64,000 nt of DNA. Source: Magallana gigas. Lineage: Eukaryota. The stretch is from NCBI RefSeq assembly GCF_963853765.1, contig NC_088860.1:40176001-40240000 (forward strand), written 5' to 3'. Positions 3,061 to 50,599 of the stretch are shown here, piece after piece. Below the pieces are notes generated by a model, which had not been told where the DNA came from, searched no databases, and was given only the letters and a program-made list of their open reading frames with translations. A program made the position numbers and the translations under genes. Positions within the stretch are counted from its first letter, which is position 1; each line of letters starts with the position of its first letter.

Positions 3061-3427
3061 AAATTAAAATACTATAGTGATTATTGTTTTCTTTCTGTTA
3101 AACATCTCGAATTTCTAAATTAATTTAAAACAGTTTGACGCGAGAAGTTAAATGGCAAAAAAATGCCTCAAGATTAAGCATTCTGATTATGAACATATAC
3201 TGAACATTTTTGCGATTTCGCAGAACAATGTATATATATGTTGCTCAATAAAAAAGAATAGAATTTTTATTTTAAACAATCACACTCTTTAACTACTAAA
3301 TTGCTGTCAGTAGTCTAGTTTCAATGCAAATACCAAATACTCAGTAAACCATGTTCTGCAATACTTAGTAACTCGAATTTTTTGGTAAATGGTAAATGCA
3401 TTATTGTCTTTTTAGACATAGATCCAT

Positions 3428-6400
3428 TCATGGTGGGCAAAATGTATTGATCATAAACATTCCACACCCTTCTTCCTTGAGAGCATGTACATGTTCTCGT
3501 GTCTTCAGCTCGAATAGTTTTCTGGTTTGGTTAAAACAAAGATACAAATCTGGAAGAAAAAAAAATAAAATTATCAATTACATGGATACATTTACAGACT
3601 ATGGTCATATAATCGCTTGTAGAAGTGATCTGGGTTTGTATAAGAGAACAAGACGTAATTTAATAGGCCGTGATTAATCTAACCGTTTGAAATATTGTTT
3701 TTATATCAGTAAGATACCCGTAGCATATGAATATGTTATTGATAATTTCAAAACGCTCACGCAGTTATACTTGTGTACGTACGGTTTATGAAGAAAACAA
3801 AAGTCATGATTTCACATTCTAATTTGAAACCCACATGGATTGGCAATCCAGGTAAACGGTTACTAAGTAATCAGCCAATTAAACGGTCGTAGCAACCATA
3901 GCTTTCAACAAATGCAAATGAATGAACTCACCGTCTCTCCCGCATGGTCTCAGGTAAACATCTCTCTTTATTTTCTCTTTACGAAATGTTTTAATGCTGG
4001 CCACGTCGGTATCGTTCTTAATAAAAAAACAATCCGTCGTAAATTGTTAATAACAATCATTCATAACAGTACCAAGTAATTCTTATTTTTCTAATGTTTC
4101 TTATTTTAACGTAAATAACGTATATTTTATAACATGATTTTCCATACATAATATTGCCTATCATTTTTTTGTTTCCAACAAAGCCATTTCATTCTAATTT
4201 TTATCTATGTGTAGATCAATGTCATAAAATGCTCAATTTACATTAGATACTTTAAAAACCTCAAATGCTATGAAAGGGGCAGGATATATATTGGATATCA
4301 ATAATCAAATTTCAATAACACACATAATAGTAATCTTACGACTATGTCCAGTTGGGTCCCATTAAGGCCCAGAAATTTGGATTTGTTTTTCTGCACTTGA
4401 AAACTGTACTTTAGATAATAACCACCGTCCAACCATTTTCTCACAATGAAATGGTCTAAAAAATGAGAAATAAACGCTTTTTTATAAATACATGTAACAG
4501 TTAAATACATACAATATTTTATATTAAATTTGTTTTGTGGGTGTTTGCCTTATACATGATATAAACATTTATCTAAAGCCGTCTATGCGTAACATTTTGA
4601 AAAGGCTAACTGTTATTTGAATATTGTATTTATTTTAACTTGACAGCAAAAAGTTTATCAATATGTTTGATTTGATAAGATAGCTTGGCATATATATAAA
4701 TAAGTGAGTCTGCACTTGATGGACTTTAAACTTACATGTACAGTCCGACATGACGCTTGCAGATTGACGGAGGGTTAATTCTTCATTTCGAACAGCCAAA
4801 GATGTCGAGTCTTTTTGTGCCATCAGTACTTTCACTTTTGGTTGCATAGTCATTAGCTTCACAGAATTCTCCTTAACAATGACCTCTTCCAAAGGAGGAA
4901 AAATGTAAAAAAAAAAAAAAAAAAAAAGAAGGTAAAATCAATGTATGCATCTTAAGTTTAAAAAAAGGCACATTTATCATCAGCAATTTAATTTTGTTAG
5001 TAAAACAAATGGTGTTTTGTATTAATCTTTCAATAGCATATTATCAAAGCACAAAATTTTATTTGAAGCACGAAAAATAAAAGTTATTGTTTTGCTATAC
5101 GAATTAAACATCGCATGGTATTATGTGTTATGTGGTGATAAACTCGATAAACAATTGTTTAGACTGTTCTTCCGTAATAAGAATTTGATATGGCAAGCAA
5201 AACAACTTACAATAATGGCATTGCACCATCCCAAAAAAGTAACACGGGGACAGGTCAAAATAACCGGGGGTTTTGAACTTGATTTACATTAATATCTGTT
5301 TTTTTGTGAAGAGGAGGAATAAAAAATACTATAACTAAGAAAAAATCAAGTGTTGGTGCTGTTTGAATTTTGAAAAAAAAAAATAGTAAAGAAACAAAAG
5401 ATTATATACAAAAAAGAATGATATAGAACATAATTCCAATACTTGTTTCGAGTAATCTAGGTATTGATATATGACAAATTTAAAATGTTAACTACAATTT
5501 ATAGGCGAAGTCAATTTCAAATGCATACCTTGAAAGAAAGATCATATTCGATTAAGTAATTTCTAATACGAAAAAAAGAAGAAGAAAAAAGCGGAAACTA
5601 TAGATTTTAACTAATATTAACAATAGTAGTAATCGTTTTGAAAACTAATGTAGACTTTAAATGTACATGTGAAATATTATCAATTAAAACCTCTTAAGGT
5701 ACTTCACTACACCGAGACTTAAATACGTTTTAAAACACTATGTCACAAAATGGCGATTTAAATGTTTTTAAACTGTTTGTATCAATCGATTTATAGATGT
5801 ATATCGTAATAGCTCAGTGGTTAAAGTATCAGGCTTGTGAACCGCAGGTCATGAATTCGAATCCGTCTGGGGCTTTTGTTCATGTTCATTGAATGAAATG
5901 TTTGAAAATATCATTTTTTTTTTATCTGAAAGAGCACATTTTTGCCTATTTGACACATATACTTCTTATCCATCATGTTATCTATCATAATCAAGTAGTT
6001 TTCTGCTGATTTGAGAAACTATATCAAGGTGTAGTGAGGCACCTTAAGACCGTCCAAGATCACCATCGATATCTAATAAACTTATATGTTACTAACAAAC
6101 CTTCTTTGGTTCCTTCCAGTAGAAATTCAATAGTTGTGAATGTTTCTGATTTTCTGTTGTATATCACCTTAGCGTAAAAAAAATTAATTTTAAAAATCAC
6201 GGTTAATTAATAGGAATTTGTCAAAACAGAAAAAAATGTTATAAAGAAAATCTTATAGTAAGACAGAGCTACTTAAAGATATTTAAAAAAAAATGTTTAT
6301 GACATGTTTATCACAAAATTAAAATTACCATGGATATTTTCTCTGTCATTGGTAATGTTCGAAAGAGCGCCAAAACAACCTCATGATCATACTCGAATGA

Positions 6401-8551
6401 TCCCAAAGTCTTCTTTCCGTTTAAACTCACTAAAATGTCTTTATCTCTAAAGAAGAAAATCAGTCATTTTATAAATCATAATGGTAATGTTGTCATTTCT
6501 AAATATTAAAAAAAAATATTTTAAAAGTCAAATTTCAAAAATACAATAGCATGATAACAATTTAAAATAAAAATGATTTTTTACTCAGGGAGTTGCTAAT
6601 TCTAAACAATTGTGTAAGACTATTTTGTTGAGGATGGGAGAGGGTGTATGATACCATTTCTTTTATCAAGAAACATCTTTGCTAGTTTGTCTTGCTTTTT
6701 TAAATAGCAATTTAATTCCTTTTATTATTTGACAAAATAAAGAGTCCCGGATTTCATCATGAATTTACACTTGCACCTTGGTACGTGTACATGTACATCA
6801 ATCTTCAATCATCTTTTACTACATGTAAAGATTTATGATAATGGTATAACTTTAACTATTTCTCCAATGCACTGTCTTACTTGACAGAAAAGTCTTTTGC
6901 TAAGATTCCGTCTGGTTGCAGGCTGCAGAATGCGTGAAGAAAGGTTCCGTCACTCCGTGAACCCGTACAAAGGAATCCTCCAAGAGCATCGCCCTTATCG
7001 CTGTCTTCATCAGCGTGTTTCACAAAAATTTCTGACACAAAAGGACTGTCATCCAGCTTAAGCAAAACAATACGACAAATATTTACACGTCTACGTTTTT
7101 TTGTGTCCATCAACGTTGTGTGCTGAAAATTATTTATCTTTTTTTAATGCAATTAGTTTATATCTTGCTCAGTTTGTATTCATAATTGGACACATTTTAT
7201 CATATGAATTTAATTATTGGTTGTAACAGTTTAATAATTTTGTTCGTAATTACAGAAGTGTCATTGTTATTTGAGGGTGAGGGGGAGGGTAAATTTTTTT
7301 AATCGATATGAGTGAAGGACGTCGTTATGTAAAATTTCAAACGATCTGAATTGTTGTATACAGCTTTAATGCGCAATGTTTCAGTTTTGCACAATTGCAC
7401 ACTTAGTGTATACCTCTTTTGCCAAACAGTTCATACATATATCTCAAAAAAAGGTATCTCTTTAAAAAAAATATTTAACTACCTGTATACTGTCTTGAGT
7501 TCTTAATCTTTGGTAAAGAATTCTCACATTGTTTCCGGGGGCTGCTGAACTATCCGTCTCAGAAAACTCTACATCATTATCCCCATCTCCATTCTAAAAA
7601 GAAAATCTTAATCACAATCATTTATTTAGTCATTTTCCCTTCAGATGACAAAATTTTGCAAGTTTTAAATTTACTTATCTGGATATAAGAGCAGTATATA
7701 TCTTTTTAGACAGCGATACCAATATAAAAAAGATGAAATTGGAACCATTCGTTTTGATACGTACTTTTCAAGTACGATCATTCAAACAAAATCAAAATAC
7801 AGCAGCTTAAAAAATGATAAAAAAAATGGTTATTTTATGTTTTGTGGAGGGTTGGATAAGGATTGTTGTTGTTGCTTTTATTGAAAACTATAGATCTAGT
7901 CTCTTTTTACAGCGGTTGATACATGTAGTATCATTCTTATTGTATCAGAATCGTAGTGCACGAATGCATCCCTTACTAATCTAAGAGGGTTTGATGTTTG
8001 TGACCATTTTTAGACTGTATTGATCTCCTTTGGAAGAAGAGCTAAATATAAAAATGCCAAAATTAAAAAGATAAAATGTATGGATTGTTATCTTTTTCTA
8101 ATTAATTATTTAAAGTTACACAAATTATATTTGAATTTAATAATTTTAGCTACATCTGACGGTTCATCGGTTAAGACGCATCGGTTATGATAGTTAACCG
8201 CAGAAGCAAGTAACAAAAATGTTGGTCAAAATAATACAAGTAAGCAAGAAATATTGTGGTGTCACTACACAAAGTTTCAGAGATGTAGCTTTAAATACAA
8301 ATGTATTGATGAAAAATAAATTATTGTTAAAAGAACAAAAACAAAACACACAAAAAACCCCCTAAAAAATGTCTGCCCTACATGTAGCTGCTGTGGTGGA
8401 ATGAACAATTAGTTAAATTGTGCGTAGTGGCATTAATAAGTGAGTATTAATGTTTTATGCAAACCACAGTGAATGATTTGGATTGAACATGGGGAATCAA
8501 GCCATCCGCTTCAATATCATCCATTTCTTTGTTAACTCCATTGGTATACAT
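3428..8551 (-). CDS. Uncharacterised leaderless 352-aa protein: acidic N-terminus + PDZ-like domain + predicted beta-trefoil (IL-1/FGF-like)
   Basis: Ten exons with GT-AG sites and consistent phases: 8551-8465, 7593-7528, 7122-6881, 6446-6329, 6167-6101, 4885-4736, 4455-4340, 4016-3932, 3629-3596, 3521-3428. Total 1059 nt, open to TGA at 3430-3428. PDZ-like segment: LGGFLCTGSRSDGTFLHAFCSLQPDGILAKDFSVKDKDILVSLNGKKTLGSFEYDHEVVLALFR. The C-terminal ~145 aa show three-fold beta-strand repeats. The gene model is well supported; the fold assignment is inference. Confidence 0.8.
5698..6043. mobile_element. TTAA-flanked MITE (Kolobok-like) carrying a tRNA-like segment
   Basis: TTAA at 5694-5697 and 6044-6047. 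16-bp TIR GGTACTTCACTACACC / GGTGTAGTGAGGCACC with 2 mismatches. Lies in intron 5 of the PDZ/beta-trefoil gene. Confidence 0.85.
5804..5872 (+). pseudogene. tRNA-derived (His-like) sequence inside the MITE
   Basis: A-box TAGCTCAGTGG (5810-5820), B-box-like GAATTCGAATCC, and ttGTGaaccgcag resembling the tRNA-His anticodon arm. Acceptor and anticodon stems do not pair, so this is not a functional tRNA. Confidence 0.6.
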
Positions 8552-10122
8552 CTACAATAAAAAAAAGGTATATATCATTAAATGTCTTAAGCTTGTAGAG
8601 ACAGAAAAAAAAATAAAGCTTAGCCCCAAAATTCGATTACGGTATCTTTGCCCTGAGACCATAAAACTAAGAAGGAATAGCAGTAGATTTTTGAACGAAC
8701 TCGCATTGACCACTGCACCAGGGACTTAAGTCGGGGCATTATATAATTGTACACGTACTGGAATAGAAATAAATCACTAGTTTTGAATGTTGTAATACTG
8801 TGCAAATCTAGAATTAGAAATAGGGTGGATAAGAAAGTCATACAAATACATCTAAAAACTTAGATAAATCTTCCGCACTTTAATATTGCACTGATATTAA
8901 ATGGAGTTTGTTTAAATCTGGTTATCATGACTAAACTGATGCATAATAGATGCCACTATTCCAATTATATACTTTTAAAAAATCAATTAATACTATAGTA
9001 AGTCAACTTTATATATGAACGATTACACAGATAGAAAATGCATATGGCTGATTAATATGCTTGCCTTTATGGTGAGCGGACGTTGTTTATGAAGTAATCG
9101 GCTAAAATCTTCCTTATTGCTTTCTCTCCCTCTATCTTGATCGTCGAGAAAATCAAGTCCACGTCTTCAACATTGGCCTTTATATACATTATATAAGCAT
9201 CGGTTCAAGTGGAGTACTGGTATAGGAAATAACATGCTTGCATATACTTCGACTGAGTCATAGTTTTAGTGTGCCCGTGCAGTATCCATCATGCAGCTGT
9301 TCTTCGGGGATTCTTCAAAAACTTTCTTTCCTTTCGATGCTATAGGCGCCTGACATTATATAATTTTCTCGTGATAAAAATACATACCTTCTACCTAATA
9401 CATGTAATCCACTAATAGTTAGAGGGTATATATTTTTTTATTATGAAAAAAAAAATGTAACGTAAGGTGCCTGTTTTCAATGCATAATTTTGCTTCTTGT
9501 ATCCACCTATATGAGATATTTGTATCAACTATCCCAATTATTTTCTCGGATGGATGGAAATAGAGGAATATATTTTGAATCTTAATGGTAATGATATTGA
9601 TGGTTAGAACAGTTACAAAAATGTAGTTATTCCGTGACTTAAAAATTCTTTTGAAATTTCCAATTACGATTACTTAGAATCCGCCGAGAGTTTACTACAA
9701 CACCGATTCAAGAGAATTTAGAATCCGGGTTCTCTTTTAAAAAATAGACTTGTAAAGTTGTTCCTCTACGATACGCTATAGAAGATCTAAAATAAATGAT
9801 CCCGCATTTCATACACTTGTACCCATAATCTTGTATTATAACAGCGTATCGTTAAGGAGCGGATTTACAAGTCTAATTTTAATTAGATTGGGTTTACTTC
9901 AAGATATATCTGATGGAAGTTTAAATATAGAAGACACTTTTGATAACAATGGCATATCAAATGGTCCACTGCCAAGTCTTCTTTTGATACAATCGAATTT
10001 GATTTTTTATCAAATTAGACTTGTCTTTCCGCTCATCTACGATACGTTACAGGTCTAATTCTAATTCATCACAGACGAATCTATTAACATGTAACTCAAA
10101 GAATCAATGACCAAATCGTGAC

Positions 10123-12548: not shown

Positions 12549-15500
12549 TCAGGACTCTGTTTCTGTCGTAGACTTTCTTGAGAGCTGGTGAAGGATATTG
12601 TCAAGTTTGGAATTGATTCGTGTTTCCATTTCACTTATCTTTAGGTCTATGTGATTTAAGAGTCTCTGCTCTAGAGCGTCTAACTTAGTGTCCAGAATGT
12701 TTGGAGGTCTAACAGAAATATCAATGTCCTCACTGCTGTAAAAAAAAAATAATTATACGTTTTATTGCAAGTTATCATTGGAGACGCCATCGTAAATATT
12801 AATGCGTCATTAATTTTTTATTTTAGATGTCAAGTGATTATAAATTATTTTGATTATTGAACAGGTGCATTCATACATGTATTTTAAGAAAATTTATGCA
12901 TTTATTATGAGACTTGATAATAAAGCATTAGTAGGTACATGTATATGTACATGCATATGCAAAATCACTATTGATCACTATTAGTTCATTCCAAATAGTG
13001 ATAATCAAAAATTAGATGTACATAATTCTTTGATTTGAAGACTTACAAATTTATAATATAATATCAGAATATCCATAGCCTCAGTCCTGGCAAGTGGCAA
13101 CAGTTTGATATTGGTGATAAATATGACCTTCAACTTTCTAAATAAAAAACCTTGATGTCACTGAAAAACCTTGACCTTTAACCTACACCTGAGATTTTTA
13201 CCATACACAGTACACTCACACTTTTAAGTACACGTACAGGTACCATAAATCAAAAAAATCTAATTAACTGCTACATACCTTATTTCTTCCACAGAATTTC
13301 CATTATTACTGTTCATCTGAGTATTGTCCAAATTAGGTTGTTCAACTGCTGTTCCATTCTCCTCCCTTCTGGCTTCATCACTCTCTTTGGCTTTTCTTTT
13401 CTCATCCTCCCTCATTCCTGAAACTTTGTCACAAATGTTATGTAACAATGAAAACACATCTGCAGCTTCTTCGCTGTTTGAACTACTTGGACGATTTCCT
13501 GTTGCTCCCTGGGACAAATTGCTGGGATTTGATTGGCTGTGTGAAGGCCGATTCGGTAACTGACTCGACTTGACTCCCATCTGAGAGAACATGGACATTA
13601 ATCCCATCATTCCAAGTGGTGACCCTGCGGACATCGGTCGCTGGCCAAGAAGATTGGACAACCCTGACATTGAGGATCTTTGATTCTGATGAGGAAAAAA
13701 AATATACATATTTAAGAAGATAATCAGCACATATACATTAAACAAAGAATAATACATGTGCATGTCAAAATCTGTATCACACCCCGTATCAACCCAGGAC
13801 TTCAATATCAGCCCGAGGGCTGAAGTCCAGAGGGCTGATATTGGGTGAGGGTTGATTCTGGTGTGATACAGATTTTGACATATGTATTTTTGTTTTTATC
13901 ATATCATAATTTAAAAAGATTTAAACTTGTTCTTATTTTCATGGGAAAATTTCTTATTTAAAAGAGCTTTATTCCAGTTTTCCCCATCTCGATACCAGCA
14001 TATTTTTGACACTCAAATGTATTGTGACGTAAATAATAAAATGTTCATGTTATGACGTCGAAGTTCAAACTGCAGTTTAGCACCAACAAATAAAAAAAGG
14101 TCAAAGGTAATCCAGCTTAAGCAAAAGTGTTCCAGAAAGCTGTAATCATAGATGTAATAATGGGTGAAATATAGGGTGATGATACAGGGGATATGATAGA
14201 GGCGCATGCCATTGTTCATATAATGGGTGCAAAAACCATGTATTCTATGCAAAGTAAATAATAAATATAAATACATGTACATGTACTTAAGATTCTTTAG
14301 TCAAGTTTAATGCAAACACAAGAAATTGATATCCATGTACGATTGCTATAAGCACTTTTCTTGAATTTTAAAATCTCAACTTTTTCATTTTTTCAACAGT
14401 TTGGAACTGTATGTATTTTTAATTCATAACAAAAGTTTGACATTCATATTTTATTCAAATTTGATACAAAACAGTGGAATCACAGAATTTTAAGTACCAA
14501 AGACTATTATTTCATGCAATATGAGACATCGTTTTCATTAATATATGTACTTAATTTACGAGTGGATGTTTGAATTTAAATTTGATATAACTTTACTTTA
14601 ATACACGTACTAAACTACTAATATTTGACTGTACACAGGAACACTGAATATATATATACCTGCTGGTACTCTTCCATTGACTGCATCAGCCCCCTGGCTC
14701 CCTCTGGGAGGTTGTCTCCAAGACTTGTGACATAACTTCTGACCTTTGACATATTTATTTGACCTATTTCACCTCCATTTCTACTGTATTCATCCTCAGG
14801 TTCTGGGTGGAGTATGAAGACAACTTTGTAAAGCTTGAAGGTACTTGTTCCCTGTAGCCTTGGAAACTGAAGTAAAAAAAAACCATTGAAATTTAATTTA
14901 AATTCAATACACTGTATATACAGAATAATCAACTGTCAAATTGTGTAATGATAATGTGTTAATATCACTACATGCCATAATAAACACAGGAATATACAAA
15001 TTCAATTAATGGAACAGGTCTAGGACACTTGTTGGAATTTATGACTATGTAAGCAGAAAATTAGGATCTGAAAGGCTAATTAAACTTGCCTTGATTCAAA
15101 CAAACAACAAAACTAATGTTTGGCCAGTTAATTTCAATACAAGTATAGCGGTAGACTGACTATTCACAAAAGTATGAAACTTTATGTGATTATTCAATAT
15201 ACCAATCAAAGTCTGCAGTTATGCAAAGAAGTTGTTGTTTGAATTATTCAGTGCATCTGCATTTGTACAAAGAAGAAAATGTCTGAATTGTTATATCATT
15301 CACCTTTATGGTCAGTCCATAACAGGTGTCCAGCGATGACCTACATCTAAACACCACTTCCGTCTCCTCTCCCCCTTCATCGTCACCCATCATCCTCACT
15401 CTCTGCCCCCGGACCGTCTTCAGATACCCCTCACTGGCATCGTAGATTTCCATCAGGCCAGCTTGACTGTACACATGCAGGCCACATATGCTGACATGGT

Positions 15501-18931: not shown

Positions 18932-21900
18932 ATGAGCAGGTTTAAGAGGAGGAAGACGTCAATGGGATCTTCCGGGCTTTCAACGATTGACATGTAAATA
19001 TAGTATATGTAACATGTTATGATGTACACACATTAGCCATGTGTATTGACATGTATTGACCAGATTGTGTTCAATTTGTTATATTATTGATACATGTATG
19101 TAAACGGATTCACAATGATAATACAGTCATGAATTTTACTCGTATATGAAGAATACTACCCCTCTGTATACAAGTTATCGATAGAAAATTTTTATATGTA
19201 CATTTTTTTTTACCTTTTTACTTGATAAAATTTCAGTTTCTTGTGGTGAGACCACAGAAATTGTCATGTGAGTTTTAAGTCCCATGAAAACTGTTTAATT
19301 TTACACTTATTGCTGAGATTAGGTATCACCTGGAACTGGTTAGGATATCCGATATAGACATGTATTTGACCCCCCCCCCCCCCCCCTTAACTTCTCCTTT
19401 GGCAAAAAGTTTATATTCCTGTTGTAAAAATCTAATGCATGGGGCCATATTTTTATTTTGAATTTTTATTTGTAGAACATCAAATTTACTTAGGTATGGA
19501 GACTGCATTCTCCATTGTAATGTCTACATCTCCAGGGGAATTCACGAACTAGACAATGATATCGTTTTGCGATATGCCTGTGCCATTGCGAACATTGGAG
19601 GTGGAATTCTCCACATGCAGAATGTGGATTACAAGAGTGGTGTATGTTCCAAAGACTTGGATACTTGGTGGAGCGGAATGGAAATCAAACTGGCCGCCAT
19701 GATCTCATCTGATGACATCTGTAACTATTTCGACATGGTGGGGAATTACGATGACGCTGATCTTTATCTTTTTGTGAAAACGTCTGAGCACATTTGTACC
19801 ATCAACTACCACTCACGGCTACCAACTGACACGGCTACTCATGAAGTCAGTTACCAGTCGGTAATAAAGTTATTACAGAAGGAAGGACCTGAAAAGCCAC
19901 TAGCTGCTCTTCCTCCTGTACCTACAGATTACTATTATGGAATTACCCATGAGTGTCTCAAGCAAGAAACAAAACAAATTCAATTCAAACAGCTTTCTGG
20001 AAGAAATTCCAGAGATGGAAAGGGCATTCCTGAAAAAATAAAATCTTTGGTATCCAAGTACGTATCTGCGTTTGCGAACCATGAAGGGGGACACATTTAT
20101 TTTGGGATTGACGATGACCAAGCTGCAGTTTATGGGGAAGATATGAGTTATCAGGACCAGGAGAGAACTGGTAGCGCTTGCATTTGCAATTTGATTATTA
20201 CATGATCCTAATGTGTTTACATGTATGTGTCAAAATTTATTTATTTGAAACTTGTATGAAATGGAAAAGATTCTACACTTAGCTTTAAATTAAAATCGAT
20301 AATCTCAAGCCAGAAGCTTAACTGAACTAAACTTAATGTAATTTCTTAGAGAGACGAACAATCATCAGGCCCTGTTACTCATTAATACACGTAGTCTATA
20401 GAACATTGTATAATATTATGTATGCATATGGTATGGATATTTGCATGAAGATATAGGATTTTTGACTTTTTGAAATATTTTGAAGCAAAACTGGTCCAGT
20501 TGAGGATGGACGTGATAATTTGGGGGAGTTCCGCATTCAGTGCCCAGAGAGGGGTACACTGGGATATCCAGTTCTTTCCTGTCCAAGATGTGCCTCCTAG
20601 AAAGGTAATCAGCTTACCATTAATAATGTGAGTATAGTCCCTCAGTATGTCATCTTTCCAGCTGGTTTTACGATTGAGATTTGGAGGGGAAAGGGGCGTA
20701 CCCCGGTAATTCTTTTTGACATCCCAAAGCCCTTCTTAAAACCAACAGAAAACTGTTGAAAATGTTATAATTTTATATGTATTCAAATCTGAAGTATTTC
20801 AAGATTTTTTAATTGATGCATGATGTTCAATAATTACATGTATTGGTACTTGTAATGTAGTATGATTTTTTTTTTTTATCTTAAAAGCACTTTATAAATG
20901 GTTAATTTTGTTTAGTATTATTTTTGTACAGTCACACTAAGTCTTCAGTAATTATGAAAGGTTTTGTTACCGTTCTTTGATTTCCAGGCTGCAAATGATG
21001 AAGAATGTATTTAAGGGCAAAAATAAAACTAGGAATTGTGAAATACTTGTGCATGGATCTGTTGGAAAAAGATACTTTTTAAGAATTGAATTTCAGCAAT
21101 GTGATACACATTGAATGTACATGTATGAACAGTAAACTCGAATGGCTTCCATAACAAATAATGTCATTGAATGTAAATTAACACAAAAATTTAATTACAA
21201 AACGTGCAAGATTTGAAACTCTTATTTCAGAATCCTAGGTTTGTGGTGGTGGTATCAGTTTGTAAGTTTCCTGGGGGTGTGTTCACTGCTACGCCAGGTA
21301 GTTACTATGTTGACACTCATAACCAGGAAGTGAAGTGCTGGTCCTTCGACCAATGGAGGAAAGCAATGCTCAATCCTTTCAGAGGTGAAATTTTATTTTC
21401 GTAACACTGAGCAACACTGATTTCAACGTCACCATAAATTAAATGTCTCAGACAAAATTCTATGTTCTATTTTTTTCTACAAGGTATTGTGTGAATAGGA
21501 AAGGCAAAAGCCATTTAATTCAGATGAGAATAATTAATAGTGTTTTATGTAAATATATTGGGAAAAACAAGCCTTGTGTTTTATTTCAAGTACCACATAT
21601 TCTCATGTAAACTTGCAAATGAGGAATCATTTTAACATATATGCATGAATGTCAGACTTCCTCATGTGCTGTGTGTATATCTTAGATATTTGCAAGACAT
21701 ATTGAATTTCTATGGATGATTTTATGATTTATTGTCAATGATGAATTTTTCAGATAAGCCAGAGCTACACGGCCGGTTTGTCAAGCTTCCCCTGATGGTG
21801 CCCCAGGCTCCGCTGGTATTCTCTTTAAAACATACCATCAACAGCATCAAATCCAAATTGTTGACCGGTTCGTTAATTCTAATTCTTTGTAAACAGTCCT

Positions 21901-24214
21901 TTTTTTTATTTTAATGATGTCAAGCTGAAGTTATAGACTTCTTAAAACTTTTTAAGTCTCAAGTTTTAACAATTCTCAGAGTATTATTGCCTGAGTTTAA
22001 CTGCAGATATCACGTTATCTTTTTAATGAACCAGTTTTCAAATCATGCACCAGACGTTTATTTGTGTTTTGGAGTGCAGTTAGTTTAAAACAATTCATTA
22101 ATAATTGCACCCATGAATTTGATGTCTTGATATTTCTTATTAGGCTTTTAAAAACATATATACATGTACATTGACTTGTAGAGAAATCGATGAAGCTACC
22201 GCAGCCGCGCCACTATCTGTCCTTCATCAACCACAAGGACACGAGGGACCTCATCTGCTCTGTGGTGGACCACTTCCCGGCGGGTCGCCATCTGTCCCTG
22301 TTTGTCAACTGCTGGGGGCTCTCGGTTCCTTCTGCCCCAATTCCCAAGGTCATCTGTGATTTGTTTGTGGTCAGTGAGTCCAGTGGGTGTCACTTAATCA
22401 CGTTCGCCAACTCAGAGTCCAGTTCTATATGGACACATGCCCAAGATGTGGCCGCACATCTCAAATACAAGATGGTGGCACTTGGGGGCTGCGTTGCAAA
22501 GTTTGGCATTGCTACACATATCATCAACGTGAAGAACTTTACAGAAGTTAAGCATGATCTGGACTGTAAATTCTATCCGTCTCATTTCGACATGACATCT
22601 GAGAAATTTGATGAGGTCATTAATTCCCTAATAGTGATAATGGCAGCATATCAACCAGTAGATTTTACAACGCTTAACTCCAAAGATATGTCAAACATTT
22701 TGTCTTGCGACACACATTTTTTTATGCTCACATGCGATCAGTTTGAGCTGCTTTTCAGGCGTCAGTTTACCAAGGAATTATGGGTACATAGTCCACCTGG
22801 TGCAGGAAAAACTGTGGCCGCAGTACAGTTTGTGCAGGAGTTAAAGCGGCGTGGATGTCAGAGTTCAGAAATTCTCTATCTGGCTGAAAACAAGCTGCTT
22901 TGTTCCTATGTTGGGTAAGGAAATGCTAATTACAGACTGGTTGAAAATCATTGACTAACATTACCATTGCAATTACTTTTTGGATTGGATTCAAGATTGG
23001 AATTAAGATTTTATGTGACTGTGCTAATTTAAGAGAGTACTTGAATTTCATTTTTACTTTAAAGTGTATAGACTGAAGATTTACTTTTTATTTTGTCAAA
23101 AACTTAAAGCAAACAGTCTTTAATAACCAATAAGTGTTTATGTTTTTGATGGTTTGATAATACATATATACATGTAGTATGGTGGTGGTTTTTTTTTTTT
23201 TCATACTCTTTTAATAGAACAATTTAAAAATATCACTAAAATTTCTTTGTATCAATAGAGTATGGCTGTATTATGTACCAGAAACCATCAAACAAAATAT
23301 ATATCAATGTACTTCTACACAACTGACATTTGTTAATCTCTTATTCCAGATCTTTCAACATCTGTCGGGTAGCAACACGTCTTGAATTCTTACAGGCCAA
23401 TAAAGATTCTTACAGCAGTGTTAGAAATGTCATTGTGGATGAGGCCCAGAATTTCAAAGACAGAGACGGTGATTGGTACAGTGCTGCCGAGCGTTTGACC
23501 AAACCACGCGAAAACTCGCAACTACAAGCATGCACAGACAAGAATCTGACAGCTATAAATTCTGATCTCAGTTTATTAGAGAGACATGGTTTCTTCTGGG
23601 TGTTCATGGACTACTCTCAGAAAGTTCACAAGTTCAATGCCGGTCTTCCATCCATCATTGGTAAAAATAACTTCATGATGAGCGAGATCACTCGTAATTC
23701 TAAAGAAATCTTTGAGTACGCCATGCATTTCATGCATGGCTCCCCAGAAGGCCAAAAAGTGCAATTACCAGATGATATGGCCGGGTTACGTGGGGATGTG
23801 GAAGTTTCACCTCACCTTGGACACAACTACAAGTCCGGACAGTCCGTCGAAATCCTGAAATGTGATAAGGAACACTTGAAAGAAAAACTCTTCCAAGTTT
23901 TGTCGGGCATTATCGATAGTGGAGTCAGTGTTGACGATTTGGCTGTTCTTGTTGGTAGCAAACAGGATAAGCCGGAAGTCACTGCTAACGTGAAACCCTT
24001 GTCGCAGAAGATAGAATGCGGCCTGGAGGTAGATACTGTGAAAGAATTCAGTGGATTGGATCGAGGAACTATTATAGGGGTGGATCCAAAAGTGAACTCT
24101 GAGCATGCTGACCTTAATAAGTTCATTCTGAGTTTAGCGACCCGTGCAAGAGATAAGCTTGTCATTATTTCTACCTCTGATGACATTCAGCAGAAATTGG
24201 CTACTAAAGTCTGA
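18932..24214 (+). CDS. Full-length Schlafen-family protein (AlbA_2 nuclease domain + linker + SF1-type helicase), 893 aa, SLFN11/13-like architecture
   Basis: Seven exons with matching phases: 18932-18993, 19536-20170, 20486-20604, 21231-21384, 21754-21867, 22182-22914, 23350-24214 (2682 nt). Motifs: RYACAIANIGGG, KYVSAFANHEGGHIYFGIDDD, VICD, Walker A HSPPGAGKT, Walker B IVDEAQNF, GDWY, DTVKEFSGLDR, LATRA. Exon 1 and the exon 2/3 junction are the least certain parts. Confidence 0.92.
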
Positions 24215-36286: not shown

Positions 36287-37537
36287 TTAATCACACGGAC
36301 AGCATCTTAATGGTTTTAAAATCCAATTTAAAATTCATCACTGAAATCTGAGAGCTGAAACTTTTATGTTTGTTCACTCCCCTTTTGATAGTTTTATTAT
36401 CATGATTGTATAATTGAATACACCTCTGGTGATTTAAAACCTGCTTAAAATAAAATTGTTGTTGAATAAATGAATCTGATGTCAATCTCTGAACCTCTGC
36501 ATGTATATAATGAAAACTAATTATACACACAGAGTATTGCACGTTTCTTCAGTTTATATTTTGTAATAATATTCGACTTTGAAAAACGTTGAATGCATGT
36601 TCAAACAAAATCCTACGCTGAACATTAAATTCATGAAAATAAAAGAAGTGCACAAGCATTGTAAAAAAGTTAGTTTTTTTCATTGGTGCAAAATAAATTA
36701 TACTATGGACAATAATTTATTGATTAAATATTTCCTTTTTCTTACAAAACAAATTGATTTTAAAAACTATGACAAAGTGCCAAAATAAATATTGATATGC
36801 ATTGAATAATTTTAAGGATCTATAATTGCATGATTCATTAAGTACATCTTAGTACATCATGTCTGAGCAAAGAGGGGTAACTCAACACTGCTATAAACAA
36901 TACTATCTCACAAGAGTATTGAGTTATCTTTTTTTCAAGAATTATTTATGATAAAAACCTACTCACTGCCATATATTTTGTGATATAGTAGAATGTTTTC
37001 TTGTACTGTACAAACACATGTAACTAAGGGATGTCATAGACTTTATACACGTTTTAGAATGATCATTTTAAAACCATTTCATTTTTAAATACTTTTAGCT
37101 ATAAACACATCTAGGATAGGTGAAAGCTGCCTATTTCCAGTAATTTTTACGTTGGAAATTACTAGTTAATGTTTAAATTCCTAAGACCTCCCTTCCCTTC
37201 CCCGAACCCCTATAGATCCACGCATCTCGACACCCTGCATTTCGATTTATTAAATACCGCAATTTTACAATAGGGTTAAACTCATGCAGGAGACATTTAA
37301 AAGTCCGGTAAACTGCCGTGTTTTGAAGGCGGAACATTTATGCACTGTATTATTTGAAAAGGTTAATGAATATTACAGCAAACCTGAATAAAGTCGGATA
37401 ATCTTTGTATATATCTAAACCCATATCGATTTATTTACCTTCCTTTATAGGTAGATATTGAACAAACATGCTTGTAACCTGCATGAATAAGATAAGCCTT
37501 GCCCATTTAAATGAAAAAAAAAACAGGACAGGTTAAA

Positions 37538-39238
37538 ATGGCGGATATTGCCTTTGCACAACATTTCGTTGAGTGTTCTATATGTCAAAAAAATGCCGAA
37601 TTCTTTTGCAAAACGTGCAAGAAAGATCTTTGCCAGCAATGCAAGGAGTCACACCAAAAGGAAAAACTAGAAACGACCCACGATATCGTGCTGTTTCAGG
37701 AGAAGTTCGGATCCGTAATTCTCGAGGAGCCATGTCGGGAGCACAAGGGTCAGAAATATTGTCTGTGCTGTCAACAGTGCTTACTTCCTGTGTGTGCTGA
37801 ATGCACAAAGGACGCACAGCACAAGAGGCACAGCTTTGTGAATCTTGAAAACGTTTATCACTCGCACAGAGAAAAACACGAGCCTAGGATCTTGAAAATA
37901 AGAAGAGAAATACTGCCATCTTGCCAGTCTTTACAAGAAGATGTACAGGATGATCTGTCCCTCCGTAAAAAAGAAACGGCTGAAATTTTGTCGATCATGA
38001 AGACACGAGCCGCTAGAATAAAGATTCTCATTGATGATGTTGTGGAGGACTACTCTAAATTATTGGCAGATATTTGCAAAACACAGAAGAGCGAATTACA
38101 AGAGCAGAACCGAGAAATAACAGATCGTATAACTCATCTAAACACAGTCTTAGATGGATATGAACGTACGAGGAACAAACCTGCTGCATTTCTCTTCTAC
38201 CTCAAGGAGCACCCTAGTTCTCACGCGGACCTTATGCCTCATTTGCTTGAAATGCCCTACCCAGTATTAACCAAGGAAAACTTCATAAGAGATGACGTCG
38301 TTAAAATGCTCGGGCACGTAGAAAGCCCAAAAGCAGAGACACCAAGAAAGGTAAAAGATATTGCCCAACAAACATACCAAATTCCTCCATTGGTGATAAG
38401 TGACACAGTTATGAAAATCAAGTCTTTCAGAGTGACAGGTATCAAGGATTGCTATCAGATATCTGCTGCCCCTAACGGGCAGTTCTGGCTCCGAGATGAA
38501 GATCTAAGATTGACAGACCTAACCGGCGCTACCATTCATAAAGTCTCCGACGTTTTGGCCGACTGGGCCATACAATCCGTGACGAAGGAAGGAGAGTTGA
38601 TTTATCTCGACAGCAAGAGTAACATCTGTAAACTTTCTCTGGATAACAAGAAGAGGAAATCTCTAGTCCAGGTCAAAGACCCGTGGAAACCTTCATGCAT
38701 ATTTTGTTCTTCGTACAATGGAGATATTCTGGTAGGCATGATCAGATACGAACAAGCCAAGGTAACGGAATCAGATGTAGTGGAAGCAAAAGTAGTGCGG
38801 TTAAGCGATTCGGGAAAGGAAATCCAGACCATTACTCATGATGTCACTGGACAACCATTATACAGTTACCCTCGTTACATTACAGAGAACCACAATGGCG
38901 ATGTAGTGGTGTCTGACCACACCAAAAACGCAGTGGTAGCTGTGGACCACCGGAAGAAACCACGATTTTGCTATACCGGAACATCGTCTAACTCGGAGTT
39001 CTGGCCTCGGGGAATTTCTGTTGACGCCCTAATGAACATCATAATATGTGATTACAATACCGACACTGTCCAGTTGATCGACAAAAATGGCCATTTTCTT
39101 CGAATGCTGCTCACCGAGAAAGACAAGCTGGACGAACCGAGCTGTCTGACGTGTGTTGGAGAAGACCAATTTCTGTGGGTGGGGTGCAGAGGCAGTAGGC
39201 GTATTTCTGCATTCAGCTACTTACACAAACCAGTTTAA
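37538..39238 (+). CDS. RING-less TRIM-like protein: 2 B-boxes, coiled coil, NHL repeats (mollusc-expanded TRIM2/3/71-like family)
   Basis: Single-exon ORF, likely ATG at 37538 (MADIAF). B-boxes CSICQKNAEFFCKTCKKDLCQQC..H and CREH..CLCCQQCLLPVCAEC..QH..H. NHL repeats YPRYITENHNGDVVVSD and FWPRGISVDALMNIIICD. Confidence 0.93.
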   Translation: MADIAFAQHFVECSICQKNAEFFCKTCKKDLCQQCKESHQKEKLETTHDIVLFQEKFGSVILEEPCREHKGQKYCLCCQQCLLPVCAECTKDAQHKRHSFVNLENVYHSHREKHEPRILKIRREILPSCQSLQEDVQDDLSLRKKETAEILSIMKTRAARIKILIDDVVEDYSKLLADICKTQKSELQEQNREITDRITHLNTVLDGYERTRNKPAAFLFYLKEHPSSHADLMPHLLEMPYPVLTKENFIRDDVVKMLGHVESPKAETPRKVKDIAQQTYQIPPLVISDTVMKIKSFRVTGIKDCYQISAAPNGQFWLRDEDLRLTDLTGATIHKVSDVLADWAIQSVTKEGELIYLDSKSNICKLSLDNKKRKSLVQVKDPWKPSCIFCSSYNGDILVGMIRYEQAKVTESDVVEAKVVRLSDSGKEIQTITHDVTGQPLYSYPRYITENHNGDVVVSDHTKNAVVAVDHRKKPRFCYTGTSSNSEFWPRGISVDALMNIIICDYNTDTVQLIDKNGHFLRMLLTEKDKLDEPSCLTCVGEDQFLWVGCRGSRRISAFSYLHKPV

Positions 39239-46365: not shown

Positions 46366-47664
46366 TCACTGATTCACTGAATGTTGACATCTCACAAAAC
46401 CTTTTAAAGCTGCTTGAAACTTTTTGTCAAAGAGACTGTAGATGTATGGATTTGCTGCACTGCTTATCAAATACGTCGTCTTGAGCAAAAGGAACATGTT
46501 GACTTTAAGGTCACTCTCCTCTTTATGAACCCACCAGGAGTTGTCTTGAAGGTTGTTGTATACAATTATAGCTACGACAAGTGAAGGAATGTACGCAAGA
46601 ACCATGATAAGAAACATCACAATGAACATCACGTGAATGGAGATTGACTGGTGCCTTGTAACAGCTAATGGTAGGACCTCCTGGTGAGGGTTGTCATTTC
46701 TATTAAACCGAGATCTGCTTGTCAACATAAGTGTATTTTGAGGTTGTTCTTTCTGTTCGATTTCAGAGCTAGAGTCTAAGTTTCGTTTCTCGATACAATC
46801 CTTTTTACTATCAATACCCGTATTTTGAAACCCAATGTTGAATGACATGTGTTCGTTGCCCTTTATTTCTTCAGCAGTAGGATTTGTTCGTTCTGTACGT
46901 GTATGCTGTTTCAAATGGCTACCTAATTTAACAGCGCAGTTGATATCTTCGCTTGAATGATTTTCCTTGATTCTAGCTTGTTTAGAAGGATGCACAAACT
47001 TTGCAGAACGTCGAATTTTCGTGCAAATAACGTATGATATTTTCAAGTTAACGTACATCACATAAACAAATATACCTATAGTACCACAACCCACAATAAG
47101 GGAATGAATAACGTCAAATGTTGGGCTTGAATGTTTTGAAAATACGCAAACAGATCCTTGAATTGTACTGTTATATGTTGAAGGTTTTTGTAATAGAACA
47201 ACCCCGCTTGTCGCAAATACGGGACAGTTTAAAATGGCTGTGATCATAACAATGGTCTTCACGATGATCCATCTTTGTCTCTCTGTCAATGGTGTTTTTT
47301 CTATCTGACAAACCATTCGATACCTATCAAAGGCAATTGCAAACACTATAAAAATGGATACACTTACAATCCAACAAATTGTGAAGTATAGACCTTTGCA
47401 TATTATATCTGAAAAGAAAATGACATTTAGGCAGAGACGAATGAGTATACAGGCAGATAAAACAAGACTGGCAAGAAAATCCACAAAGGCTAGGATCGGA
47501 ATGAAGAACCGCCCTTTTCCAGAAATCATCTTTTTCCAGTAAATTACGAGAACAGTCGCATTGCCTATAACTCCAGTTATACAATACACTGAAATAATTG
47601 CAATAGTTGGTGTTAGAGTCCGGATTATTGATAGATTCCACGTTTCCAATCCAGCTGCCGCCAT
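46366..47664 (-). CDS. Intronless rhodopsin-family (class A) GPCR, peptide/CCK-receptor-like orphan
   Basis: Seven hydrophobic segments with GN in TM1, LAFVD in TM2, DRY, and NPYIY. ATG at 47664 follows an acceptor-like ttccag. Confidence 0.93.
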   Translation of the reverse strand: MAAAGLETWNLSIIRTLTPTIAIISVYCITGVIGNATVLVIYWKKMISGKGRFFIPILAFVDFLASLVLSACILIRLCLNVIFFSDIICKGLYFTICWIVSVSIFIVFAIAFDRYRMVCQIEKTPLTERQRWIIVKTIVMITAILNCPVFATSGVVLLQKPSTYNSTIQGSVCVFSKHSSPTFDVIHSLIVGCGTIGIFVYVMYVNLKISYVICTKIRRSAKFVHPSKQARIKENHSSEDINCAVKLGSHLKQHTRTERTNPTAEEIKGNEHMSFNIGFQNTGIDSKKDCIEKRNLDSSSEIEQKEQPQNTLMLTSRSRFNRNDNPHQEVLPLAVTRHQSISIHVMFIVMFLIMVLAYIPSLVVAIIVYNNLQDNSWWVHKEESDLKVNMFLLLKTTYLISSAANPYIYSLFDKKFQAALKGFVRCQHSVNQ

Positions 47665-49417
47665 CCTCTGGAAATTCAAAAGTAAAGCTTCAACACAAAA
47701 TAATTAAGCTTTAAATCGAAATCAATTTCCTTTTATTAAGTTTGTTGCAAATTAACACAGCACTTTATAGTAATTATGTTTTATTAAGTCATTTGTTTTA
47801 TCCTGTCTGTGCTCAGCACTAGAATTTAGACGATGGCACTGGCTTGGACATATATAACCAAATGGTAAAAGAACCCTCATAAAAATGACGCCTTATTCCC
47901 GCTATGGCAGAATGTCCGAAAATTTTTCTTTTTCATTTAAGGAAAACGAACAGCGTATTATTTCTTTATAAAGGAAACGGAGACCAACTGTCAACGTATA
48001 TTAACGGAAATCGACTGGTTTAAATTTCCCCTTAAAAAATTCAAACGTGAAAAATATTAAAATACAATTATTCTTTATTGATAATCAATTGGGATATTTA
48101 TAATATATGTTTACATTTTTACATGAAGCATGTAACTAGAGGAAATTCCAAGTCATATGCATGTCTTAAGATTTCTTAAGAATTCATAATAGAAAACCTA
48201 ATTTTACATACAATATTGAAAACAAAATAAGAACATTAATGTATATGTATATTCACTTCTCATTTAAGAAAATCATTTAATTTTATCATAAACATATTTG
48301 TGAGAAAAAAAATTAACTGTGATAGTAAAAAAAACCCCTTTTATTTCAGCAGTGCATAGAATGTTTATTTGCACACGGGTGTTTATCAGGATGAAACATA
48401 AATTGAGCTGTATCAATGTTAAGTGTACTAGAATCAAGGCACATACAAACAAGTTAATGACCTCCAGTGTAATTAATTCACAAGTTCACTACTGCTTAAG
48501 TTTTTCTTGCACACAAGCTTGGAAATATTCCATTTTTACCTAGTAACTTCCATTATCCAAGGAATATAGAAAACATACATGAAATTATTTTAACATGTTA
48601 TTTAGTTAGCTTCCGCGACAAAATATATAGTGCCCGAAACTGTGTGGAGTAAATTAATTTTTGTTAAGGAATAGATATATATATATAAGTTATTGTTTTT
48701 CAAAAGTACACATCAAATTGGTTATGTAAGATTGAAAGTTTTATTTAATCGTACAAAATATATATATATACTCAAAACAGGTGAAAACGTTTATTTTTGT
48801 GCTCATGGCGCATGGATTAGCAAAGTGTATTAATAGAACTTGAACGTCGCAGATTTCCAATGTAAACATAAGGTAAATATACACTGAATGTAAATATACA
48901 GAGGTGGAATAAATATCAGGGGTGGTTGGTGGGAAAGAAAATGGCAAAACTCAACTGTCTGCGATCAAATCCAAACAAACGACAAAGAAAATAGTCTGGA
49001 CACATTCGCAGGGGTGAATAAGTGTACATTGATCTTTTTCTGCATTAATATTAATATTCTTTTTTATCTTATCATTATTATAAGTTTAAGATAATAACTT
49101 GAATAGGCACCCTATATTTTCATTTAATGATTTTCCGTGCATATATATTAAAGAATTTGGTAGCTTTATAATAATCTTTTATGAGAATAAACAAGAAATT
49201 TTAACTTTATGTAACATTACCAACCGGTATATCTTTTTTATCACTATTTTATAGCCAAGCACAAATTAATGTCAAAAAAGTAATTAAATTGTACATGGTT
49301 GATACAAATGACATCATATCATAAAGTGACAATATATGTAGAGTTTATGTCATTTATTATACAAATAACACTTCAATCTTTATTATTTTTCTCTTTTTCT
49401 GAAGTTTGAGTTCATAC

Positions 49418-50599
49418 CTAACGTTTTAAACATCCGATCACGATAGCACGAAACTCTTTGTCAAAGAGACTATATATATAAGGATTTGCTGCACTGCTGA
49501 TTAGATACGATACTTGGAACGAAAAGAAAAGATTAATATCCATAGTATGTTCTTCAACATCGAACACCGAAAAGTTTTGTGTGTGGTCGTTGTATATCAT
49601 TAGAACAATTGTCAAGGAGGGAATATATGAAAGAAGCATGATGACAAACATCACGAAGAACATGACATGGATATAGAGTGACTGGTGTGTCCTTACAGTT
49701 TGTAGTAAATACTTTGGATAACACGTTTTATCCTTGTTTACTTGCAATCTACTCACAGATATATCAATGGGTTCAAGTTGCTCGATTGATTCATCTTCTG
49801 GGCGAGATTCCATTTGATGAGGGATGTCTCTTTCTAGATTATCATTTTCAGAGTTTCTGTCTGCAAATGGGCATTTCATGCATGCAGTAAAAAAATGTTT
49901 ATTTTTTGTTTTATTGTAACTGATAATGATATTATTTTCAGATCGTCGAAGCTTTGTGCAAATGACGTAAGCTATTCTTACATTGAAAAACAACACACAG
50001 ACAAACATACTAACGATTCCAATGATTACAACAAACGAGTGGATCACTTCAAATGTCGGATCTAGATGTTTTGAAATGGTACAGATGGATCCCTTTATTG
50101 AATTGTTGTATTTAGAAGGCAAAGGAACAAAAACAGTTCCACTTGTAACAAGAACTGGAATGTTTAAAATTCCGCTGAGAATAAGTATAGTCCACACAAT
50201 AGTCCATTTTTGTCTCTCTGATAGTGGTTGTCTATTTATTTGACAAATTATCCGATACCTATAATAAGCGATTGCAAACACCAAGAAAACTGAGGCATTA
50301 AAAATCCAACAAATGATGTGAAAGTAAATTTTGCACAGAACGTCTGAAAAGAAAACAACATTTCGGCATAGGTTTAGGAGGACACCAAAGGAACACACTA
50401 AACTGGCAAGAAGATCCACAAAGGCAAGGATCGGAATGAAAAAGCGCCCTTTTCCTGAAATTTTCTTCGTCTTGTAAACTATAAGCACCGTTGTATTTCC
50501 AATGGCACCGGTCATACAACAAATACTTATGAATACAATTGTGGGTATTAGAGTTTGAATCACTGACCAATGCCACCTGTTTAGGTCAATGCTATTCAT
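49418..50599 (-). CDS. Tandem paralogue of the class A GPCR
   Basis: Shares SGKGRFFIPILAFVD and YLISSAANPYIYSLFDK with the neighbouring receptor. The DRY motif reads YRY. Likely ATG at 50599; an upstream in-frame ATG exists at 50650. Confidence 0.92.
   Translation of the reverse strand: MNSIDLNRWHWSVIQTLIPTIVFISICCMTGAIGNTTVLIVYKTKKISGKGRFFIPILAFVDLLASLVCSFGVLLNLCRNVVFFSDVLCKIYFHIICWIFNASVFLVFAIAYYRYRIICQINRQPLSERQKWTIVWTILILSGILNIPVLVTSGTVFVPLPSKYNNSIKGSICTISKHLDPTFEVIHSFVVIIGIVSMFVCVLFFNVRIAYVICTKLRRSENNIIISYNKTKNKHFFTACMKCPFADRNSENDNLERDIPHQMESRPEDESIEQLEPIDISVSRLQVNKDKTCYPKYLLQTVRTHQSLYIHVMFFVMFVIMLLSYIPSLTIVLMIYNDHTQNFSVFDVEEHTMDINLFFSFQVSYLISSAANPYIYSLFDKEFRAIVIGCLKR

Follow-up and report, generated by a model that had tools for sequence, protein, structure and literature searches.

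The closest described counterparts of the gene reported here are the IL-1anc ('ancestral IL-1') proteins (Fontenla-Iglesias et al., Nat Ecol Evol 2026, PMC13736523; preprint PMC12338702), which are leaderless, shorter than 500 amino acids (aa), and defined by a PDZ domain at the N-terminus and an IL-1-type beta-trefoil at the C-terminus, the latter encoded by 3-5 exons (PMC13736523). These proteins were found through structure prediction, since BLAST and HMMER fail to retrieve them, and range across the Eumetazoa from cnidarians to lampreys, with several genes in each bivalve species examined (PMC13736523); bivalve members include PmaxIL-1.1-1.3 of Pecten maximus and CvirIL-1.1/1.2 of Crassostrea virginica (PMC13736523; PMC12338702). 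Their PDZ domain was detected by the authors with the Pfam families PF13180 and PF17817, and an (F/L)ES motif in strand 9 of the trefoil was described as 'often' or 'largely' conserved (PMC13736523). Intron phases are conserved in the PDZ domain and, within the trefoil, for the two introns at its centre (PMC13736523). In sea urchin and lamprey, infection induces members in phagocytes; the pro-form is cytoplasmic or nuclear, and a caspase processes one member (PMC13736523). The teleost protein nIL-1F is regarded as an early-recognised member, going by the citation of PMC7144542 in PMC13736523, and Pro-IL-16 is a leaderless PDZ cytokine precursor known from animals that include invertebrates (PMC8326423). 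Here we describe a gene of Magallana gigas, the product of which very probably combines a PDZ-like domain with a beta-trefoil. The gene occupies 8551 to 3428 on the minus strand of a 64,000-nucleotide stretch of contig NC_088860.1 (the window, C8:40176001-40240000). An earlier reading made without database searches (the sequence-only reading) had proposed a hidden, spliced gene at this place encoding a leaderless mollusc IL-1-like protein, and had mentioned reports of invertebrate proteins with a PDZ domain and an IL-1 fold; these reports exist, being those on IL-1anc, bivalves included (PMC13736523; PMC12338702).

The minus strand of the window was searched between 3428 and 8551 by six-frame translation and a survey of GT and AG sites. 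Several in-frame exon chains of 349-366 aa were allowed by the sequence, one among them being the 352-aa model of the sequence-only reading, and the sequence alone was therefore insufficient to fix the exon model. Raw reads of three RNA runs labelled as the same species (X20, X21 and X23) and the contigs of a fourth (X1) were mapped to positions 3300-8700, and reads, contigs and frame together defined a minus-strand gene that opens with an ATG at 8551 and closes with a TGA stop, the last base of which is 3428. Nine coding exons splice into a reading frame of 1032 nucleotides, corresponding to 343 aa and a stop. The eight joints (given as minus-strand donor/acceptor: 8465/7593, 7483/7056, 6881/6446, 6329/6167, 6101/4885, 4736/4455, 4340/4016 and 3932/3549) all read CT..AC on the plus strand, equivalent to GT..AG in the sense of the gene, and their intron phases are consistent. 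They were present in raw reads from up to three runs, and each was also found in an X1 contig; read support was lowest, at 2 reads, for 8465/7593, 4340/4016 and 3932/3549, and highest in X23 for 6101/4885 (11 reads) and 4736/4455 (9 reads). First mates of exon reads fell on the plus strand in both poly(A) runs, as expected for minus-strand RNA in most types of stranded library. Expression of the gene in the sampled reads was low.

Coding exon 1 (8465..8551; aa 1-29) begins with the ATG, has an AG acceptor just before it, and is joined to coding exon 2 (7483..7593; aa 30-66), an acidic low-complexity N-terminal region, in reads of X20 and X23 as well as in one X1 contig. The PDZ-like domain is divided between coding exon 3 (6881..7056; aa 67-124 plus 2 nucleotides), which holds its first part with an LGGF loop, is followed by a phase 2 intron and is conserved in all four paralogues described below, and coding exon 4 (6329..6446; aa 125-164), which holds the second part (KDILVSLNG ... 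HEVVLALF) and precedes a phase 0 intron. Coding exon 5 (6101..6167; aa 165-186) encodes the linker between the two domains, being present in the cDNA-derived product P0002 and in the paralogue alignment. The trefoil starts with unit one in coding exon 6 (4736..4885; aa 187-236), both flanking introns of which are phase 1, and continues with unit two in coding exon 7 (4340..4455; aa 237-275; next intron phase 0), strands 8-9 in coding exon 8 (3932..4016; aa 276-303; next intron phase 1) and strands 10-12 in coding exon 9 (3428..3549; aa 304-343 and TGA), the strands of exons 7 and 8 being placed with a structural model of paralogue A2. The last joint, 3932/3549, was observed in X21, X23 and an X1 contig.

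The eight joints bear out the hidden spliced gene of the sequence-only reading, with its GT-AG borders and consistent phase, and correct its ten exons and 352 aa to nine coding exons and 343 aa. A GT-AG-bordered stretch at 3596..3629 on the minus strand ('DHFYKRLYDHS'), which had been taken as an exon and joined to an acceptor at 3521, falls within an intron in all transcripts observed: it was skipped in every read, contig and cDNA, and the exon at 4016-3932 joins 3549 directly. With this exon unused, the last third of the C-terminal domain had been misread in the first model, and the C-terminus given there as '...GRDDHFYKRLYDHSLKLF' is replaced by a true third unit and C-terminus reading ...VYLRPCGRDDLYLCFNQTRKLFELK.... 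One X1 contig ends at 3521, exactly at the alternative AG acceptor, and a spliced trefoil contig apparently ends there too; no joint at 3521 was found among the RNA reads, and these ends may represent a minor isoform or a polymorphism. A micro-exon at 5562-5529, modelled from the sequence with GT-AG borders, was likewise not used in transcripts and was rejected.

Independently of these runs, the Logan transcript contig L001, assembled from a different run and encoding the 152-aa product P0002, contains the joints from exon 4 through the last exon and lacks the unused stretch. A 1-nucleotide deletion in an A-run breaks its frame, such that the trefoil is split over two frames. Its 5' end is chimeric: positions 1-549 of L001 represent a Kazal-type protease inhibitor transcript with multiple domains, in which C..VCG.DG.TY.N.C units recur, and the fusion is most likely an assembly chimera.

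Other transcript ends and joints were observed within the gene. A back-joint from the exon 2 donor at 7483 to the exon 1 acceptor at 8551 was seen in one X20 read and one X1 contig, the latter with a depth of 157 against 88 for the linear 7483/7056 joint; the back-joint contig differs at 7517, 7520 and 7526, all three changes being non-synonymous. This could stem from back-splicing of exons 1-2 into a circular RNA, from tandem duplication in another haplotype, or from a copy outside the assembly. In the single-cell run X23, 5-6 reads at each of two sites in 6516-6526 end in A runs, which could reflect either internal priming on a genomic A-run or an intronic polyadenylation site.

The genome was searched in six frames with P0002 and the matches were modelled exon by exon, which yielded three further loci and hence a family of at least four paralogues on the same exon plan. 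These are A1 (C8:40147343-40150135, minus strand), A2 (C8:40166532-40171019, minus strand) and B (C8:41982766-41988185, plus strand); three copies, including the present gene, lie in same-strand tandem within ~37 kb, and the fourth is 1.8 Mb off. In A1, A2 and B the frames are open from the PDZ exon to the stop with the same phases, and nearly all AG/GT borders are found at homologous positions, three trefoil exons of A1 being 3-9 nucleotides shorter. Amino acid identities to the present gene were 54-65%, and those between paralogues 54-68%. Fragments of cDNA from public assemblies, P0031 (A2) and P0032 (A1), have the last three exons spliced, indicating that paralogues A2 and A1 are expressed too. 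Among the reads over exon 3 (6881-7056), variants encoding A81P, A90P and A108E were observed, which are the residues of A2 (C8:40170846-40171019); they are probably cross-mapped A2 reads or the product of gene conversion between the tandem copies.

The ratio of non-synonymous to synonymous substitution rates (Ka/Ks) across paralogues was 0.09-0.28 in both domains, with Ks near saturation, and comparisons of the coding sequences thus suggest that all four paralogues are under purifying selection. This bears on whether the gene could be a decaying duplicate or a transcribed pseudogene without function, as the low expression and the frame-breaking deletion in L001 might indicate. Such an explanation is very improbable: the genomic frame is open across all nine exons, every splice site is canonical and used, Ka/Ks of this gene was 0.16-0.24 against each of the paralogues, and the deletion is confined to a single Logan contig that is itself chimeric, which makes a rare allele or a fault of assembly the likelier source. 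The gene is almost certainly functional.

Protein searches, for which queries were at most 152 aa long, yielded nothing beyond pieces of exons or cDNAs, which belong to the gene itself, to its paralogues or to close relatives. Two matches were obtained with P0002, only exon open reading frames (ORFs) with the PDZ exon, and 19 fragments, P0031 and P0032 included, with an 11-row profile. A search with a 49-aa exon against 1.84 billion representatives returned fragments only, a scan of metagenome contigs found no relatives, and the 90% clusters held solely unnamed Logan fragments. No full-length product of the gene, of a paralogue or of an orthologue was found in two protein collections, perhaps in part since records of this genome are missing there.

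Hydropathy analysis detected no hydrophobic leader or transmembrane segment in the 343-aa ORF, the highest 9-residue value in the first 40 aa being 0.27 and the highest 19-residue value in the whole protein 1.35. The absence of a signal peptide, claimed by the sequence-only reading, accordingly stands for the ORF from the first ATG, and for this only: the AG acceptor directly before 8551 implies at least one upstream exon, which is unplaced. An IEAD/G motif, a candidate site for caspase cleavage, is present at aa 13-16. Upstream of the gene, at 13260-13805 on the minus strand, there is an ORF of 181 aa with no Pfam match.

The PDZ-like domain spans about aa 70-165. For its comparison, 13 full PDZ domains were collected from the same genome with PF00595, and an hhalign comparison of the four-paralogue profile with the alignment of these seeds gave P = 4e-5 and a probability of 70% over 45 columns. 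The matched columns run from CSLQPDGILAKD via KDILVSLNG to HEVVLALFRTLP, which is to say from PDG..A to the HE.V..L helix, and the LGGF loop lies upstream of them. With a plain hidden Markov model (HMM) of the 13 seeds, paralogue A1 scored 10.8 bits and ranked best of 2004 sequences, 2000 of which were shuffles. No usable match came from comparing ESM-Atlas features of the isolated PDZ exon, and in a six-frame genome search with PF13180 the locus was not among the matches listed. On these sequence comparisons, we assign the region with moderate confidence to a divergent PDZ-type domain. The exon that follows, encoding the linker, is among the best-conserved segments across the paralogues, and the linker region of the present gene (aa 165-195) contains no Asp.

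The C-terminal domain (aa 187-343, ~157 aa) is encoded by four exons, with intron phases 1 at its entry and then 1, 0 and 1, and its fold is a beta-trefoil. When ESM-Atlas features of aa 185-284 were compared, the named neighbours belonged solely to the beta-trefoil clan (scores 0.89-0.92), and the non-overlapping last 59 aa led independently to the same clan (0.88-0.90); the families concerned were AbfB, RicinB_lectin_2, Fascin, FRG1, CDtoxinA and Inhibitor_I66/I48. Together with the hhalign match of the PDZ region, this upholds the two-domain order, PDZ-like and then beta-trefoil, of the sequence-only reading. The three similar units seen there in the trefoil are visible by eye, and as an internal threefold sequence repeat they are not significant (hhalign P 0.2-0.6).

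Structural models were made with AlphaFold2 (AF2). The first two units of this gene (P0002:47-146, 9-row alignment) were modelled with a predicted local distance difference test score (pLDDT) of 46, and the Foldseek matches of this model are meaningless. Units 2-3 of paralogue A2 (P0031, 101 aa, 9-row alignment) gave a pLDDT of 61.5 and a predicted template modelling score of 0.53, with a core (residues 21-88) at pLDDT 65-80. Foldseek ranked mouse IL-33 first against the A2 model (probability 0.99, TM 0.51, root-mean-square deviation 3.0 over 71 columns, E 0.15), and the IL-1 family (IL-33, IL-18, IL-38 and IL-1Ra) contributed 13 of the top 50 matches. The E-values are weak (0.15 and above), and nearly all matches are beta-trefoils. 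Strand 9 of the model reads DSFLKP, and the residues aligned at the place of the (F/L)ES motif are YLR in this gene (exon 8); A1 and A2 share FLK, and B has YLK. Only the first position of the motif is kept. In its spacing, the hydrophobic pattern of strands 9-12 may be superimposable on that of IL-1beta.

The sequence-only reading had set IL-1 against fascin, ricin-B and FGF as the nearest trefoil. The first rank of IL-33, and the absence of any natural FGF from the top 50 Foldseek matches of the A2 model, agree with its choice of IL-1 over FGF; with the lectin-type and fascin trefoils the comparison ended in a tie. In VIA-align comparisons with the A2 model, which covers two-thirds of the domain, Z was 7.3-7.5 for IL-33 and 7.2-7.3 for IL-18 versus 8.1-8.6 for HA33, ricin-type and CBM42 trefoils and 7.4-7.9 for fascin, the gap of ~1 between the lectin-type trefoils and IL-33/IL-18 being a tie by the tool's own measure. 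Lectin-type and fascin trefoils score as well as IL-1, and a model of this extent does not separate the superfamilies. The protein might then be a cytosolic beta-trefoil lectin tethered by its PDZ domain, comparable to leaderless bivalve lectins such as SeviL, and bind glycans of microbes or damaged cells. The RicinB and AbfB clusters among the nearest by features would agree with this; however, the domain has no match to Ricin_B or related Pfam families, has neither a QxW-type triple repeat nor a significant internal repeat, unlike most R-type lectins, and the Z differences that would favour a lectin are within the tie. To our knowledge, no lectin with a PDZ domain has been described. We consider the lectin explanation distinctly unlikely.

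A further possibility is that the protein is an intracellular scaffold or adaptor rather than a cytokine, in which the PDZ domain docks on the C-terminal tails of partners and the trefoil binds protein, actin or lipid, after the models of fascin, FRG1, hisactophilin and the leaderless intracellular FGF-homologous factors (FHFs). Consistent with such a role, no leader was found, PDZ domains are typical of intracellular scaffolds, and the strongly conserved, Asp-free linker suggests that the two domains act as one unit and are not cut apart. Nevertheless, fascin and the FHFs have other architectures and are slow-evolving and single-copy, whereas the present gene belongs to a fast-evolving tandem cluster (54-68% identity). 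Fast-evolving tandem clusters are common for immune genes. The same two-domain design is, moreover, induced by infection in sea-urchin and lamprey phagocytes, with caspase processing of one member (PMC13736523), and an adaptor role is on balance rather unlikely.

Weighing these observations, we regard the gene as probably a bivalve member of IL-1anc as published. The proposal that the protein is mollusc IL-1-like is sustained by its match to the published IL-1anc design, and is weakened by the replacement of the (F/L)ES motif and by the lack of Pfam matches to IL1 or PDZ. Several observations count against membership. No Pfam family, PDZ included, matched the separate exon pieces of the PDZ-like domain at E up to 10, and the plain HMM of PDZ seeds gave this protein only 1.5 bits, which is not significant. 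Likewise, none of the Pfam families IL1, FGF, ricin and fascin matched the trefoil, either as exon pieces or in the 152-aa P0002, at E up to 10, and no sequence match was found in the PDB, with a profile or without. Strand 9 does not keep the (F/L)ES motif; a linker without Asp precludes a caspase cut there of the kind mapped in sea-urchin SpurIL-1.3; and the 150 TIR matches that scored best in the genome, a lower bound, include none close to the cluster. The likeness to IL-1anc is drawn from the published description of the family.

Both the IL-1 identity and the cytokine function are what we infer from this comparison. On the reading we favour, the product is a cytosolic, leaderless protein of four parts, namely an acidic disordered N-terminus, a divergent PDZ-type domain, a short conserved linker and a C-terminal trefoil. 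If it behaves like its counterparts in sea urchin and lamprey, immune cells would produce it as a cytoplasmic pro-form, which the PDZ domain would hold to an intracellular partner; it would leave the cell by an unconventional route, through pores or damage to the cell, and a receptor of the immunoglobulin/TIR type would be bound by the trefoil. We hold it to be rather unlikely that the protein acts as an extracellular cytokine. The tandem family may also be a diverged PDZ-trefoil branch that no longer works like IL-1. Given the missing FES motif, the linker without Asp, and a trefoil that scores equally against sugar-binding trefoils and IL-1, the protein could stay uncleaved and serve in the cytosol as a sensor or lectin anchored by its PDZ domain; we judge this unlikely, and if true, the 'ancestral IL-1' design would have more than one function in animals.

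As an IL-1anc protein, the product is a new member of a published family whose design is already known in bivalves, and the gene itself would not surprise a specialist aware of the 2026 IL-1anc paper. The value of the present analysis is one of annotation, in that it provides a gene model backed by transcripts, and a family of four genes with the coordinates of every paralogue, for a class of proteins that sequence searches miss. If the gene is truly IL-1anc, molluscs, with haemocytes and challenge by Vibrio or herpesvirus, would offer a tractable setting for leaderless IL-1-like release and sensing outside vertebrates. In view of the absent FES motif and of a linker devoid of Asp, it may also be asked if processing by caspases is general in IL-1anc.

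Several other elements are present in and around the gene. A highly repeated element at 5653..6195, in the 1.2-kb intron and outside the gene product, is covered by reads 10-100x as deeply as its flanks in every run and has numerous loose ends at 6047; a second intronic repeat at 8004-8043 has the same excess (10-100x) in all four runs, with loose ends at ~8000-8004 and 8031-8043. Neither contains a transfer RNA (ARAGORN) or an Rfam family, and both are dispersed repeats inside introns. Elsewhere in the window, the ORF at 22190-22918 matches Pfam SLFN_GTPase-like (E 1.4e-13), in agreement with a Schlafen gene that the sequence-only reading had noted at 18932-24214. Two intronless ORFs at 37511-39238 (575 aa) and 58060-59751 (563 aa) encode B-box zinc fingers, the second also an NHL repeat, and are TRIM-like genes of a kind expanded in bivalves. 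A tandem pair of intronless minus-strand ORFs, at 46366-47679 (437 aa) and 49418-50650 (410 aa), encodes rhodopsin-family seven-transmembrane G-protein-coupled receptors (E 4e-18 and 1e-16).

Amongst known systems, the R-type or ricin-B-like lectin trefoils (botulinum HA33/HA17, CBM13/CBM42 and mussel SeviL) differ from the oyster protein in the QxW repeat, Pfam match and internal repeat that it lacks, and the structural similarity of the A2 model to them in VIA-align is nevertheless high. FGF (PF00167) has neither a Pfam match here nor a natural representative in the structural top 50. Pro-IL-16 is likewise leaderless and PDZ-containing, but the IL-16 cytokine is the PDZ domain itself and includes no beta-trefoil. 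The vertebrate IL-1 proteins (IL-1beta, IL-18, IL-33, IL-36/38 and IL-1Ra; PF00340) share with it the lack of a leader and a twelve-strand beta-trefoil, with IL-33 placed first and IL-18, IL-38 and IL-1Ra within the Foldseek top 50 of the paralogue model. Unlike them, the oyster protein has no Pfam IL1 match, no IL-1 signature motif and no evident caspase site ahead of its trefoil, and amniote IL-1 proteins have no PDZ domain. Lumpfish nIL-1F, a vertebrate gene, has a PDZ domain before an IL-1-type trefoil as does the oyster gene, the two being likened by description. The IL-1anc family differs in the (F/L)ES of strand 9, where the oyster copies have YLR, FLK or YLK, in the linker, which in SpurIL-1.3 is cut by a caspase and in this gene is without Asp, and in that no linked TIR or IL-1R-like gene was found here among the 150 best TIR matches. 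The present gene resembles IL-1anc in overall plan: a disordered N-terminus, a PDZ-like domain, a linker and a C-terminal trefoil of ~157 aa (published 150-165 aa); no leader from the first ATG, and 343 aa, below the published 500; four trefoil exons, within the published 3-5; a divergence too great for Pfam IL1, as the authors of IL-1anc report too; and several paralogues within one bivalve genome.

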